Origin: Selaginella moellendorffii
Lineage: Eukaryota; Plantae; Lycopodiophyta
DNA length: 64,000 bases
Assembly (NCBI RefSeq): GCF_000143415.4
Contig: NW_003314265.1
Coordinates: 820,405-884,404, forward strand
Reading direction: 5' to 3'
Positions 18,892 to 27,208 of this stretch are shown here, one piece after another. Numbering within the stretch: the stretch's first letter is position 1; the number at the start of each line of letters is the position of its first letter. The notes beneath the pieces are model-generated. The model searched no databases, had not been told where the DNA came from, and saw only the letters and a list, made by a program, of their open reading frames with translations. The position numbers were made by a program, and so were the translations under genes.

Positions 18892-19322
18892 GGCCAAAGC
18901 CGAGAGAAACCAAGAGGGAAGTGCGCTTGTATACCCTCGTCATGTCACGCGCTACCTGTGTAGTTAAATCATGGTTCTCATGCATTATAGTGTGAATCAT
19001 GTGTCAATTATACTTGCCCTAAATCCGTCCTTTAAGGGCAGCAGGTTGTAAAGAGGTAGTTTGGCTCAAACACTTGATGGAATACTTTTATTTAATTATT
19101 TGTTAACTTGTTGGGTTGTATGACCCGTCTGTGTAAAAAAAATTCTTTGAAGATTTTAGACTTTAGCGTTTTGAAAGCCATGGGGAGAGTGGAAGCTTCT
19201 TTTGGGCATATCCTCGAGAGGTTGTGTGGCACCACGTCTCATCGTTCTTTCCGGCCAGCCCAGACACCTCGGCTGTTACGCACAATTTTAGTCACGAATG
19301 GCTTGAGCAGAGACCTTTGCAA

Positions 19323-21977
19323 ATGGCTGGAATTCCAGTTCCGCGGGTGATCATCCTGGAACTGGTTCTGCTCGCAATTTTACAAGCTGGTGCTTGTGCT
19401 GGAGCTGGTGATGCTACCGGTGCGAATTTGGGGGTCTCGGGGAGGTCTGCCTTTGGTTCCATCACAAGGCGGGCATTGCTGGAATGCCGGGATCCAAATC
19501 CATACCTCAACTTGATGCTTGACACCGCAGGCCCTCTCGCCAGTGTCCAGACAGTGGTGGCGACCGTGAGTGGTGTTCTTCGGCCGAGCTCCAGAGATTG
19601 GATTGGAGTGTTCTCGGAAGCAACTCACAAGTAAGCTCCCAATTTTCCGAATAACCATCTTTCTCTTCCATTTTCTTCTGTCCATTCTTCTTTCTCCCTT
19701 ATTCCCTCTTGCTCCATATTAGTTTGTCTGCTTGCTCCATTTGATATCTGGTGATTCTTCAATGCGGAAGCTCCGAAAACCCGCACTTCACATCGGTCGT
19801 TTTCGTTCTACAGCTACTCTGACTGCCTTGCAAACAAAGCACTTTATCTGCAGACAGGAGACTTTTCCAGCCTGCCTTTGCTTTGCGACTATCCCCTCAA
19901 GGTTGTTCTACAAAAGCAAGAAAGATAGCTCTAATGATCTTGATCTTAACTTGGCTCTTGATCGATTTTGATTTCTTCCAGTTCAAGTTCCTCAGCGATG
20001 ATCCTGGCTACATTAACTGCTCCAACAAGACGTGTGTCACTGATTCATGTAGCGTGAGGACTTGCTCTGGATCACTTGCTTTCCGTCTTGTCAACATAAG
20101 AACCGCCGTCACCTTTGTGTTCTTTGGCGGCGGGCTTGTAACTCCCTGCATTCTCAAGATCGCCCCACCGCTTTCGTTTGCGAGGCCTGGGGCCCCTTTA
20201 TACGGGCATTTGTCTCTCAAGGACTCCTCCGGCACCTCTGTAAGCTTTTAAATCTTTTCACAACTTTACTCTACTAATTTCTTTAACTCAAGATGGTGGT
20301 AACTTGGATCAGCAACGATAATGCCACTCAGAACGTCGAGTATGATGGTCGGAGCTCCACAAGCGAAATCACAACTTTCCAAAAAGAAGATATGTGTGGT
20401 AAAAGTTAACATTCTTTTTTTTTAACTTTTATTTTGGGTAATTCTTTTAGGTTCGCCAGCTACAGATTTTGGATGGCACACTCCTGGATATATGCATCAT
20501 GCAACAATGACAAGTCTTTCTCCTGGCAAGAGTTTTTCTTACAGATATGGAAGGTAAGAAAACTATGTGGGTTTCAGCAACATTAGCCTACGTCTGGTTA
20601 AATCCATAGTGAGAAAGTTGGCTGGAGCAAACTCAAGAATTTTACCACTCCTCCAGGCGAAGGATCAAACAGTGCAAGCTTCATCGTTTTTGGAGACATG
20701 GGGAAGGCCGAACGAGACAACAGCTTAGAACACTACATACAAGTAAATATAGACTTCTTGAAATTCTACCTTAGCAAGTATATATTGCAGCCTGGAGCAT
20801 TGCAAGTGATAGATTCTCTTGCCAACCAGACTGTGGACACCATATTCCACATAGGCGATATAAGTTATGCCACTGGCTTTCTCGCGGAATGGGATCACTT
20901 CCTTGAGATGATTGAGCCTGTGGCTTCCAGGATCCCTTACATGACGGCCATTGGAAACCACGAGAGGTACCGAAATCTATATCATTTGCTCCAAGTTCTT
21001 GATTTACTATGATCGCCCAGGGATCATCCTGGCTCAGGATCCAAATACAACTCCACAGACTCGGGAGGCGAGTGTGGAGTTCCATATCGATCTTACTTCC
21101 CGATGCCTGCCCAAGGCATCGACAAACCATGGTACTCTATAGAACTCGGTCCCGTGCATCTCACAGTAATCTCCACGGAGCACGACTGGACTCCAAACAG
21201 TGAACAGGTAAAAGAAAGTTCCGTTTTGCTTTAAGTTAGGTATAATATTTTGTTCTATCATTCCTATAGTATTCTTGGATGGAACACAATCTTGCTTCTG
21301 TAAACAGAACTCACACACCATGGCTGGTATTTGTCGGGTACATAACTCACCATTTATTTCTAAATTATTCCTAATTATTTTCATATTATTAGGCATCGCC
21401 CAATGTACTCTACGCAAGGCGGGCTTCTCTCCAAAATTTTACCCGCAATCGATCCTGATTTTGTAGAAGCTGTAGAGCCTCTTCTAGTGAGTAGCAAGGT
21501 AAATATAATATATATATATATGTCCAAGCTTTTCAATTCTTCTCTCCAGGTTGATTTGGCATTGTGGGGACATGTTCACAACTACGAGCGCACCTGTGCT
21601 GTGAATCAAAGCCGCTGCGTCCAGGTCCCAGCCAAAGACGATACTGGGGTCGATGTTTATGTCAGTAATGGATCAGCTCCAATTCATGCCGTGGTTGGCA
21701 TGGCTGGATTCAGCCTCGATCTCTTCCCAGCGAACGTAAGTTTTCAATAGTTCATAACTTCGAAACTATATGCTGCTTCAGTGGAGTTCATGGAGCATGG
21801 TTCGAGTCTCCGAATTTGGGTATAGCCGGGTCTCAGCCGACAAAAACGAGCTCCTGTTCGAGGTACCATAGTTGCAAACATTCCTAAAACCTAGCAAACC
21901 TGTTCTTCCAGTATATAATAGCGAAGGATGGAGCAAAAGCCGATCAATTCAAGATATTGAAGAACATTAATCCCTAA
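19323..21977 (+). CDS. Purple acid phosphatase (nucleotide pyrophosphatase/phosphodiesterase-type, PAP1/24/27-like)
   Basis: Signal peptide, DWIGVFS N-domain and all five metal-ligand motifs: GDMG, GDISY, GNHE, GHRPMY and GHVH. Confidence 0.92.
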
Positions 21978-22285
21978 GCGACGGCGTACCACACCTATCA
22001 CACGTAGGGGACGACTTGTAAGCAGCGTCCGGGTACCATGAGCGATCCACTCTGGAACCGGCAGCAGTGAAATTTCGAAAAACAAAAATCTAATAATATT
22101 GCTTCGCCCCGATTCAAAGAAAGTCAAATATCATTGACCCAGATCAAACTGAGAACTCGCCCTGCGTCGAGAAAAGATCCCTCGCATTCAGGATTGCGAT
22201 CTAGACAAGAATCTCTGGCATGCCAAAATACAGTATCTCTGCTCTTCTCTGGAGCTTAGGGTTCTCTCACTCTTGTTCACAAGTT

Positions 22286-23586
22286 TCATGCTGCCGAGTG
22301 GAGAAGGGATGATGAATTATTGACCGCATCTTCCCTGACAATCGGATGGCGCGGCCGCTGCAACGGGTAGACTGGGGATCCGTTAGGATAGAGCAGCCCG
22401 AAGTGCCTCTCCAGCTCAGGCCCGCCCTTCTGATTCTCGTTGAACAGAGCGAACACCCAAGCGGCGAGCCCTCCCGGCTTCCTGGGCGTCCCGACACCGC
22501 TCCTGGTGCGTCGGATCAATCTGCTGTTGAACGCCTTGGCATTCTCCACGGTGGCGCCTGGGGCTCCCCCGCTGGGCCAGCCGGATTCCCCAATTGCCAG
22601 CGGCAGGTTCCCGTAGCCCTTCCTCTCCATGGCCGAGTAGATCGCATCCACCATGGCATCGAAAAGATTCGTGTAGCCCTTGCCGCCGTCCCAGACCTTG
22701 ACATCGTTGCTTTGGAAGAGGGCGTATTCCAGGCTTATGTCGCGGGGATTCCCCTGCCAGGCGAAGAAGGTGTACACATTGGCCATGAACACCGAGTTCG
22801 TGGAGGACAGGAAGCCCAGCAGCGAATTCACGACTGAGTCCCTTCCGTTGTCCGATCTGAATTCTCCCGCGGATGGCGGGAATGATTCTTTCAGGATATC
22901 CGTTGCGATTGGCGTCGTGATCTTGATCTGGTTGAAGCCAAGCGAGTTCAGCGCGTTTCTGAGATTCCACATTGAAGGGACTAGATCGGGCCAGGGGAGC
23001 CCGGGATCCGAAAGGACTTCGTTCCCCACCGCGATGAATTCGACGTTCGTTGCGGGGTAAATCGGCGCGATTCTATTCCGGACCCAGTCCGACGCCGCGT
23101 TGGAGCTCCTGGCGATGGAGCTGAACTCCTGGTTGGTCACCGCGACTGTGAGCCGGATCCCCGAATTCGCAAAAGCCCGCAAAACTGTTCGGTCCGTGTC
23201 GAAGATCTTCACCCTCTTGAACTGCAGGGACTTGATGAGATTCACCACTTGATCCGGCTGCGGAAGATTGTTCGCAACTCTCCCATAGTTGACCCCAATA
23301 TCTTGGCAAGAACAAGAAACGAACATCAGCGATCAAACCAACTTCAAAGAAGATGAAAGTTCTTTCTACCATTTGCTCCTCCGTCTCCGCCACCCCCTCC
23401 TCTTTGGCACCAGTTGCATTGGCTCTGGCATCCAGCTCCGCAACCCGAATCGCACCCGCACCGTCCGAACTGGCTGCAGCACATATTGTCCGGGCATGGA
23501 TCGTTGGGACCGCATTGCTGGGCGATTGCCGCAACAAGAACGTTCGTCAGAACCAAGAAGCCCACAAAGACCCTGATGTTCTTCAT
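22286..23586 (-). CDS. Secreted hevein-like (CBM18) domain fused to a GH17 beta-1,3-glucanase
   Basis: Exon 1 (23586-23370): signal peptide, QQCGPNDPCPDNMCCSQFGRCG...CGAGCQSQC and a Gly linker. Phase-1 GT-AG intron 23369-23302. Exon 2 starts DIGVNYGRVANNLP and has the catalytic AVGNEV and IGESGWPS. About 410 aa. Confidence 0.88.
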
Positions 23587-24331: not shown

Positions 24332-27208
24332 ATGGTGACGAGCAGCAGCGCGGGGCCTCTCAGAAGCGGCTCTGGCGTGACCGCGCAGCAGCCGCAGGCG
24401 CAGTATCTGGTGCTCGCGGTCGAGGCGACGGCGGCGCTAGGCCCGTCGTGGCCGCTGCTGCGATCCGAGTATCTCGACAAGCTCGCCAGGTAATTTCTTG
24501 TTTGTTGGCGAGGATTCTCCTTCCTGATCGGTATTTTAGAGCGTTCTATGGTCAAGATGGGAATGTCCAGGTGAGAATTTATTTTTTCTCTCTCGGTGGT
24601 TCTCTCACGGTCGTGGCTTTCTAGAAGGACAATGGGGCTACTCTGGAGATGGCGCTCGTGGTCTTTCGAGGCCATGATTCCTACAGTGGTAGGCAAAGAC
24701 TTTAGAGAGGTTTATCCATCTATCACAGGCTGCCTGCTCCAGAGAAGTGGCTGGACGCCGAGCTTGGAGCTGTTCCAGCTATGGCTATCGTCCATCGATT
24801 TCTCGGGTGGTGGATTTGGCGAAGTTGCTGTGGCGGAGGGATTAGCGGAAGCTCTTGTGGTAAGCATATATAAGTTTCATTTTGAATAATGAAGCTGAGG
24901 ATTTTGAGCCTTGCAGATGTGTTGTCCCACGACTCAGCCGCCAAGTAACCAGGCATGCCAGAGACATTGTATTTTGGTGCCAGCTTCAAATCCTCACAGG
25001 CTTCAAGCTCCCGTCCCTCATCCGCCTCTAAGCACTGGCGCGGACGCGAAGCCGGACCAGTGGTGGCTTGCGGATGCTGAAACCGTTGCAAGGGCATTCT
25101 CTCAGGTTGCTTTATGCATTTTCTCATAGACGATTGTTTTCTCACATCGTGTTTTCCTTCAGTGCCATATATCTCTTTCAGTTGTTTGTCCGCGGCAGTT
25201 ACCATCGTTAAAGAACCTGTACTCAGTGGTATGCTATTGCTAATTCTTATATGCCTTTCCTTAAGGCTTTTGAGATCAGGCCAAGCAAAATCCTCGAGCT
25301 TCTGACCCTTCGAATGAGATTGCCAAGCACACGCAGCACCTTGTCTTAATCTCCGAGAGCTTTTTGGAGGCCAGGAATTGCTTGCGTCGTGTCATTCAGG
25401 CTCCTGCACTTGCTGCTGTTAGTATGCCACCATCGCCTACAAGTGTAAAAGTTGAGCAGCAAGCTGCTGCTCCTTTGGCGGTGCAGACTACACAACCAGT
25501 ACCTGCAACTGCGGTGCCATCAGTATCCACTGGCACAGGTCTCCTTAATTTTAATTTCGTGAAGGCTTGGCTAACTTCTTTCTTTTGTCTCGCAGTGCCT
25601 ACCAATGGAAGGCAATCACAGATCATGTCAAATGGTAGCATACCCATGTCAACTGTAAAGATTGTAAGAAATTTTTTGTATGTTTCGTTTCTTGCAGGAG
25701 CACGTCTCGACCTCTGGTCCGCTCTCATATGGCTCGCCGCCTATGGTGAACACAAGTATGGCAGCAGTTTCTCTTCCGATACAAAGCTCGGGGGCCACTT
25801 CAGATATGAGCCAAGACGTTCTTCGTCCCCCACTCGCCTCAGACGCATCGACTGCTGTTCAGGACTTTAAGAGCATCAACACTAACCCTTTGCAATCGCA
25901 TCGTCCGGTTCCTGCTGCGAGCGTGCTGAATCAAATCAGGTAGGGAGCAGGCTCAGCAGCGGTATCAAGCATTCTCTCTGCTGGATCTTTAGCAGTGGGA
26001 CAAGTTGGTATGGGGATCACACAACCAGTTAGTCAGCCAGCCAGCATGGCACATGGACTTAGTGGCGATGCAGGTAGTGCAACCCTGGGACCAGTACAAG
26101 GAAATGCAAATACTAGCAGCATTCTGCCGTCGAATGCTCCTGCGGGGATGATGCAACCAGCTAGTATGCCAAGTGGCTTACCTCCGGTGGCGAGCACGGT
26201 TGGAATGGCCCAGAGTTTGCAAGCTGCAAATCCTCTCGTGGTTGCCAGAGCGTCCAGGGTGCCGGACTTGGAATGCCGCATAGATCGATAGCAGCACCGA
26301 GCAACTCTGTTGGGAGCGCTCCGAATGCTGGTGTGATGCTTCCGATGTCTCAGCCTGGTCAGAATCCAGCAACTGGCAACGCTGGAGTATCTCATCTAGT
26401 CTCGAATGGTGTTGCCACTACACCACCGCAGCAGCCTGCGAATACAAAGTACACGAAGCTCTGGCAGGTGCTGGTTTTGACTTTGTGTTGCTTCTCCTTT
26501 CTCAAAATTGGTGTGACAGGGGACATTGGCAGGCCAGAGGCATGGAAAGCCAGTTCAAATCTGTAGCTTGGAGGTGAAAAGTCTCGATATCTGGATACGA
26601 ATGCACATGAATTTCATCTCTATTTTTTTTATGGCAGGGATACCGGCAAACCTCGTCTCCTGAAACGTACGTATTTACTTATGGAAATTAACATGTGACC
26701 ATGCGTTGCAGGTTGGCTACCGATTGGCCGCTGACAATGCAGATAGTGCGTTTAATTACACGGGACTACATGAGCAAGTATGGAACGGGAACTTTATTTT
26801 CATCTGTTGTTATTGATTTTTCTTTTCCTTCCTTTCAGCAGGAAGGAAAGGCCGAGCTTCTGGTTTTCAGGCCACTAAATCAACATGGATTCCTCCAGCA
26901 GCTCGCAGATAAAAAACTGGTACATATAGAAAAAAAATTCTTCTCCAGGGCAACTGATTTTCCTTGTTTTACTTCCAGTGTGCTGTCATTTAGCTCCCCT
27001 CGCAGACGTTGCTGCTTGCCAGCGCTGATAAACCACAGCGAATGATTGGAATGCTGTTTCCAGAGGTAAGCACATCTTTCTCAAAGCCTGTGAGGTGTTC
27101 GTGACCGCACAACAGAGCAAACCTCCGCAGATGATGCCGGGTGGATCTCAAATGCCCATGGTCGGCTCTGGTGGCACACAAATTCCAGGACAAAGTTACC
27201 TCCTCTAG
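24332..27208 (+). pseudogene. MED25: Mediator subunit 25 (PFT1) pseudogene
   Basis: vWA exons (LVLAVEATAALGPSW...YLDKL; QRSGWT; RHCILV.ASNP) and ACID exons (KYTKLWQG; DWPLTMQIVRLI; LLVFRPLNQHGFL; LPSQTLLL). In-frame TAG at 25941 and 26991, frameshifts near 26236 and 26539, Q-rich region absent. Confidence 0.82.

Follow-up and report, generated by a model that had tools for sequence, protein, structure and literature searches.

Hevein modules have GH19 chitinases and Barwin proteins as their textbook partners, and GH17 glucanases carry either an X8 domain or no accessory domain at all. In a survey of plant lectin architectures by Van Holle and Van Damme, hevein is combined with GH18 and with GH19, and GH17 is combined with GNA (PMC6362431, Table S3); a second account pairs plant hevein only with GH19 (PMC5485960). 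Chimeras that the first survey records for bryophytes and lycophytes include GH17/GNA, from Marchantia, and hevein/GH18, from Marchantia, Physcomitrella and Selaginella (PMC6362431, Table S3). The pairing of hevein with GH17 is missing from both of these accounts, which bears out the view, taken in an earlier reading of the DNA by sequence alone (the sequence-only reading), that such a pairing is unusual. The gap in the first survey is probably explained by the absence of the pairing from P. patens together with an old Selaginella gene model that lacks the relevant exon. As to whether the CBM18-GH17 architecture occurs across plants, a point that the sequence-only reading had raised, the architecture does recur in sequence databases, where it is held by a few non-seed plants (mosses and the liverwort Riccia), and no description of it was found in the literature searched, including that on mosses and on Selaginella.

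We analysed a window of 64,000 nucleotides from Selaginella moellendorffii. Comparison with database sequences indicates that a gene on its minus strand is a genuine two-exon gene, encoding a hevein-like knot and an intact GH17 domain, with the following features (positions are those of the window).

23586-23370, minus strand: exon 1, encoding signal peptide, ten-Cys hevein-like module and Gly linker
23521..23586, minus strand: signal peptide, residues 1-22, with a basic n-region, a hydrophobic core and predicted cleavage between AIA and QQ
23407..23520, minus strand: hevein-like (CBM18-like) ten-Cys module, residues 23-60, from Pfam, phmmer against the PDB and the moss alignment
23370..23406, minus strand: Gly-rich linker, residues 61-72 and the first base of codon 73
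23302..23369, minus strand: intron of 68 nt, GT..AG, phase 1, with the same splice sites in the second haplotype (locus L006)
23301-22286, minus strand: exon 2, encoding the GH17 domain and the C-terminal tail
22361..23301, minus strand: GH17 catalytic domain, residues 73/74-386, from PF00332 and PDB matches
22286..22360, minus strand: C-terminal tail of 24 residues that contains an N-x-S sequon, followed by the stop codon
23617..23619, minus strand: upstream in-frame ATG, 11 codons ahead of the RefSeq start, in both haplotypes

At 100% identity, both exons match the RefSeq protein XP_002964390.2 (P0122; 410 aa; scaffold GL377569.1, 842690-843990), which has the same splice and begins at the same ATG (at 23586, minus strand). 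Thus, the proposal that a single exon encoding signal peptide, hevein-like module and Gly linker is joined in frame, at phase 1, to a glucanase holds for the RefSeq model. Codon 73 is split by the intron: exon 1 supplies its first base (23370) and exon 2 the other two (from 23301; G+AT gives Asp73). The IGVNYG strand of GH17 follows, and the stop codon TGA (22288-22286) comes after the 24-residue tail. Note that the sole alternative AG in the intron, as read from the sequence, would put GH17 out of frame, and that the signal-peptide cleavage site is a prediction from the -3/-1 rule. RefSeq labels XP_002964390.2 'probable glucan endo-1,3-beta-glucosidase' with no mention of the hevein module. 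The Selaginella proteins are named in annotation only as glucanases, and the module lies under the Pfam threshold. No transcript contig carrying the protein of either Selaginella allele was found in the contig collection searched. The upstream ATG is conserved in both haplotypes, but a TATA-like CTATAAG (23634-23628) precedes it by no more than about 10 nt, and this ATG is probably unused.

Further upstream lie two direct TGACG motifs (23956-23952 and 23943-23939, minus strand), at -370 and -357 from the ATG and 13 nt apart, which are kept in both haplotypes despite an upstream region that is only 92% identical. The pair resembles an as-1/TGA-factor element, a likeness that may be fortuitous. 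By synteny with loci L006 and L013, the neighbours of the gene are a Med25 VWA-domain protein gene (about 24400-25300, plus strand) and a purple acid phosphatase gene (about 19320-22030, plus strand).

Exon 2 matches PF00332 (GH17) at 299 bits against a cut-off of 28.2, over profile positions 1-304 of 306, and its best match in the PDB is CJP38 (6JMS, E 6e-85), followed by banana 2CYG, Hevea 4HPG and barley 1GHS. Consistent with the earlier claim of an intact GH17 domain with both catalytic Glu residues, Glu167 of the GNE motif (codon 23020-23018) and Glu311 of GESGWPS (codon 22588-22586) are present, align with their counterparts in 6JMS and 2CYG, and occupy columns that are invariant in an alignment of the moss and Selaginella proteins (A1). 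Glu361 is a third noted GH17 glutamate. By homology, then, the catalytic domain would be expected to hydrolyse beta-1,3-glucan. No X8 domain was found in the gene by Pfam. The 24-residue tail lies outside the Pfam and PDB alignments of GH17, and similar tails with N-x-S occur in the moss homologs; by analogy with class I glucanases it is possibly a vacuolar-sorting propeptide, which is speculative. (GPI anchoring was considered and ruled out: the tail is short, has a hydrophilic end and is too little hydrophobic for a GPI signal.)

Exon 1 covers the full PF00187 (Chitin_bind_1) profile at 21.5 bits, and the whole protein scores 18.1 bits, in both cases under the cut-off of 27.8. When exon 1 was compared with all PDB chains by phmmer, pokeweed lectin-C (E 9e-14) and WGA (3.5e-11) were found, along with the Hevea class I chitinase-like CBM18 (0.0016; 21.8 bits) and hevein (0.006-0.03). 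All 24 matches are hevein-type except one weak match (E 0.056), and the best single solved hevein domain reaches E 2.8e-4 at 24 bits or less. The eight canonical Cys residues are all present, as are the CC doublet and the CCSxxGxCG core. There are two extra Cys: the first immediately follows the CG of loop 4 ('CGC'), and the second lies two residues past the last canonical Cys ('CNxC'). These likenesses indicate that the module is homologous to hevein/CBM18. Structure prediction agrees in kind and adds little in strength. An AF2 model of the module alone has a pLDDT of 62, and its top 28 Foldseek matches are all hevein-type, the best at an E of only 0.05 and with TM scores of 0.4-0.5; a model of the whole protein, built on a 7-row alignment (pLDDT 62.7, with the hevein part near 50), was too weak for a fold search; and the ESM Atlas places the module with generic Chitin_bind_1 clusters (scores 0.77-0.80), which serves as a lead only.

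The module departs from hevein in its loops, its number of Cys and its binding residues. Its first loop has five residues (C-x5-C), as has that of the moss modules described below, whereas that of hevein has eight. Peptides of the 10C-hevein-like type are characterised by a fifth disulfide that ties the C-terminus to a loop. Like the 10C-hevein-like peptides WAMP-1a and Ee-CBP the module has ten Cys; however, the extra Cys of those peptides lie in loop 2 and in loop 5, respectively (PMC5093130), that is, elsewhere than in the Selaginella module. Hevein domains bind chitin through loop 3, which supplies a Ser and a pair of aromatics, and through loop 4, which supplies a third aromatic, a Tyr (PMC5093130). 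In the Selaginella module the loop 3 motif reads S-Q-F-G-R, so that Ser and Phe are kept and the second aromatic is replaced by Arg; in loop 4 the Tyr position is deleted, which leaves the loop short by one residue. One of the three binding aromatics is left.

A second copy of the gene allowed the two parts of the protein to be compared in their rate of change. The protein XP_002967643.2 (P0001; scaffold GL377574.1, locus L006) is encoded at a locus that is syntenic with the window, being flanked, like the window gene, by Med25-VWA-like and purple acid phosphatase genes, and therefore represents the other haplotype. The haplotypes differ at 6 of 217 positions in exon 1 (4 nonsynonymous, 2 synonymous), at 2 of 68 in the intron and at 9 of 1016 in exon 2 (2 nonsynonymous, 7 synonymous); the 800 nt upstream are 92% identical, with gaps. 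Splice sites, reading frame and all Cys are undisturbed. Constraint on exon 1 is weaker than that on the enzyme, with a near-neutral pattern, in a comparison of small counts that involves only six differences. Because the module is degenerate (in the Arg and the deleted Tyr position) and evolves faster than the enzyme, its affinity for chitin is probably weak or lost. The earlier idea that the module anchors the enzyme on chitin is accordingly doubtful for the Selaginella copy.

The fusion is no novelty of Selaginella. Three clusters among the relatives of the GH17 part carry PF00187 together with PF00332. The Ceratodon purpureus proteins KAG0560293.1 (P0140) and KAG0604346.1 are hevein-GH17 fusions (UniRef A0A8T0GMW5, automatically named 'Chitin-binding type-1 domain-containing protein'), and further moss fusions, P0031 and P0007 with their cluster members, come from metagenomes and sequencing runs. 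(Word searches with the hevein parts of P0122 and P0140 returned only their own clusters and were uninformative on distribution.) Each of the moss genes is an unbroken ORF of 407-423 codons in genomic DNA, and thus the two domains are joined there without any splicing.

The moss proteins have the same order of parts as the Selaginella protein (signal peptide, ten-Cys module, Gly-rich linker, GH17), and have in common with it the ten Cys, the short first loop and the catalytic Glu residues, with GH17 domains that are 47-49% identical. Their Gly/Ala/Ser-rich linker stands at the same place and can be as short as 6-8 residues. They differ from the Selaginella protein in that their genes are intronless, their modules exceed the Pfam cut-off (31.7-35.8 bits on PF00187) and have a complete binding set (S, W/Y, Y, Y), and their GH17 domains belong to a separate bryophyte clade. 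The Selaginella module aligns with the GH17-linked moss modules end to end, at 27-36 bits and with all ten Cys in common, and with the eight-Cys module of the liverwort Riccia at 23.8 bits. Among the sequences compared, the alignments make the moss modules its nearest relatives.

The Riccia protein came from a HMMER scan of a fusion profile against 1.84 billion representatives, of which the best 150 were inspected; one further clear fusion was seen among these 150, KAL3698904.1 of Riccia sorocarpa (P0163). As in Selaginella, a hevein module (44 bits on PF00187) precedes GH17; in contrast, the module is a canonical, long-loop hevein with eight Cys, and both catalytic Glu are replaced (GNQ, SSTGWPS). 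The protein forms a long branch in the GH17 tree. Judged from these replacements it is probably not an enzyme, and it may be a non-enzymatic protein that binds glucan and chitin.

Several moss proteins appear to hold stages of module loss, and these adjoin intact fusions on the tree. P0059 has a module with an internal deletion and both ends kept, P0041 has the linker alone, Physcomitrium patens XP_024400456.1 (P0305) retains an 'RRCGG' relic, and the P0019 group has a degenerate cluster of Cys. In Marchantia polymorpha, the intact GH17 domain of MpGH17.16 (P0246) follows a short Cys-rich segment in which Pfam finds no hevein; the segment may be another eroded module. A separate observation concerns gene neighbours: a thaumatin (PR-5) gene lies about 2 kb from the hevein-GH17 gene in Ceratodon purpureus and on related moss metagenome contigs (L007:1-940; L001:725-1108, L002:505-888), which suggests a small neighbourhood of defence genes.

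Taken together, these sequence comparisons make it probable that the Selaginella gene encodes a PR-2-type GH17 endo-beta-1,3-glucanase with a hevein-like knot that is partly vestigial or re-purposed, and that it is one of a patchily distributed set of hevein-GH17 proteins of non-seed plants. According to this explanation the protein would enter the secretory pathway with the knot held at its N terminus on a Gly-rich hinge and with an intact GH17 active site, which would cut beta-1,3-glucan in the manner of a PR-2-like endo-beta-1,3-glucanase. Chitin and glucan are interwoven in fungal walls. In mosses, modules with the Ser/Trp/Tyr/Tyr set probably tether the enzyme to fungal-wall chitin; the Selaginella protein is most likely mainly a glucanase. 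The hevein-GH17 chimeras would then be a small set that has been kept patchily, in mosses, a liverwort and one lycophyte.

How the fusion arose is a matter of the intron and of the GH17 phylogeny. In the hevein-less Selaginella paralogs P0004 (L011) and P0005 (L012), a phase-1 intron (65 and 73 nt, respectively) lies 2-4 codons ahead of the IGVNxG strand, and the intron of the window gene agrees with these in position and phase. Thus, the junction is formed by the ordinary GH17 intron after the signal-peptide exon, in agreement with the earlier statement that GH17 genes commonly have an intron there. The conserved phase-1 intron permits replacement of exon 1 and permits equally an insertion into exon 1. 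In a maximum-likelihood tree of the GH17 domain (56 rows, LG+C20), the Selaginella fusion groups with hevein-less P0004 (100/99) within a tracheophyte clade (98/97), and the moss fusions lie inside a bryophyte clade (100/98). An AU test, applied to a group that was chosen after the tree had been seen, rejects a single clade of Selaginella and moss fusions (delta lnL 70.6, p 0.0002). On these sequence comparisons, the non-sister position of the GH17 domains is in conflict with the derived ten-Cys, short-loop traits that are common to both modules.

Three routes to this conflict are possible: an ancient fusion followed by many losses, which are demonstrably frequent in mosses; transfer of exon 1 from one GH17 paralog to another; or recruitment of the same hevein subtype twice. 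What looks like one family may actually be two or three independent fusions, because Selaginella and moss fusions do not come together in the GH17 tree. We entertained the more general idea that the hevein-GH17 fusion is older than the split of mosses from vascular plants, and that it gave early land plants a chitin-targeted glucanase that has been repeatedly eroded or lost since. This idea is tentative, and on balance we doubt it. Were it true, the shared module on non-sister GH17 domains would record deep paralogy or the movement of exon 1 at the phase-1 intron, and the family would be a case of naturally occurring module swapping among the defence enzymes of plants.

The sequence-only reading had proposed a different history, in which the first exon of a class I chitinase was shuffled onto a glucanase to give a glucan-cutting enzyme that could anchor on fungal chitin; we considered it as a recent event in Selaginella. 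Part of this proposal survives, in that the junction at a phase-1 intron on an exon boundary makes replacement of exon 1 mechanically possible; moreover, the sister relationship of the GH17 domain to hevein-less P0004 and the AU rejection of a clade with the moss fusions fit a separate acquisition in the lycophyte line. The source of the module is where the proposal fares badly. The extra Cys pair and the C-x5-C loop are common to the GH17-linked moss modules, and the module is nearer to these modules, at the scores given above, than to the CBM18 of the solved class I chitinase at 21.8 bits. Furthermore, the module lacks all but one of the three binding aromatics, which does not suit chitin anchoring, and a difference of 2.8% between haplotypes in exon 1 argues that the fusion is not very recent. 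We therefore regard a recent chitinase shuffle as unlikely.

It is also conceivable that the protein is a precursor, from which a hevein-like antimicrobial peptide is released by cleavage at the Gly linker with GH17 as the cargo, as in the comparable cases of hevein/Barwin and Ee-CBP/class I chitinase. A module with ten Cys and a flexible Gly linker would suit such a role; however, moss linkers can be as short as 6-8 residues, and class I chitinases retain their CBM18, so that continued attachment is equally ordinary, and we consider release of a peptide quite improbable.

Finally, it is very improbable that the fusion is an artefact of annotation, with exon 1 outside the glucanase mRNA and either a 346-aa ORF as the product or exon 1 as a separate small hevein-peptide gene: although the first genome annotation lacked exon 1 (models of the EFJ30990.1 and SELMODRAFT types, 346 aa), the unspliced exon-1 ORF stops 9 codons past the donor to give a Cys-rich peptide of 80-91 aa, and exon 1 is weakly constrained between haplotypes, the 346-aa ORF lacks the signal peptide that a wall or vacuolar GH17 enzyme requires, the signal-peptide exon and phase-1 intron of the paralogs lie in precisely the same place, mosses have both domains in one continuous ORF, both haplotypes retain splice sites, frame and all Cys, and RefSeq has revised both alleles to 410 aa. 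(Note that the start of the 346-aa ORF of the first annotation is an ATG at 23326-23324, within the intron; for want of a signal peptide the 346-aa model was rejected as the true product.)

The preferred reading, that of a glucanase whose knot is partly vestigial or re-purposed within a patchy set of hevein-GH17 proteins, makes the family useful in two ways. The moss fusions with a full binding set offer a ready-made test of whether chitin tethering boosts the attack of a glucanase on fungal walls. Furthermore, the decay of the module can be seen side by side, intact in Ceratodon, degenerate in Selaginella and deleted in Physcomitrium and other mosses, with what appears to be a dead enzyme in Riccia, such that the family is a compact system for the gain and loss of accessory modules.

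Three described groups of proteins invite comparison with the Selaginella protein. The GH17/GNA and hevein/GH18 proteins of non-seed plants are likewise lineage-restricted fusions of a lectin with a glycosidase, although the domains paired in them are other than hevein and GH17. With plain PR-2 glucanases and with GH17 glucanases that bear X8/CBM43, the Selaginella protein has in common the catalytic domain, the catalytic residues and the phase-1 intron after the signal exon; in X8-bearing GH17, however, the accessory module is C-terminal and binds glucan, whereas that of the Selaginella protein is N-terminal and resembles a chitin lectin, and X8 is lacking. In class I chitinases (CBM18-hinge-GH19) and in pro-hevein/PR-4 (CBM18-Barwin), an N-terminal hevein module on a hinge precedes a defence cargo, just as in the Selaginella protein, and the core of their modules, CCSQxGxCG...CGxGCQSQC, is similar (PMC5093130). 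The Selaginella protein is set apart from them by its GH17 cargo, ten Cys, a first loop of five residues and the lack of two of the three binding aromatics.
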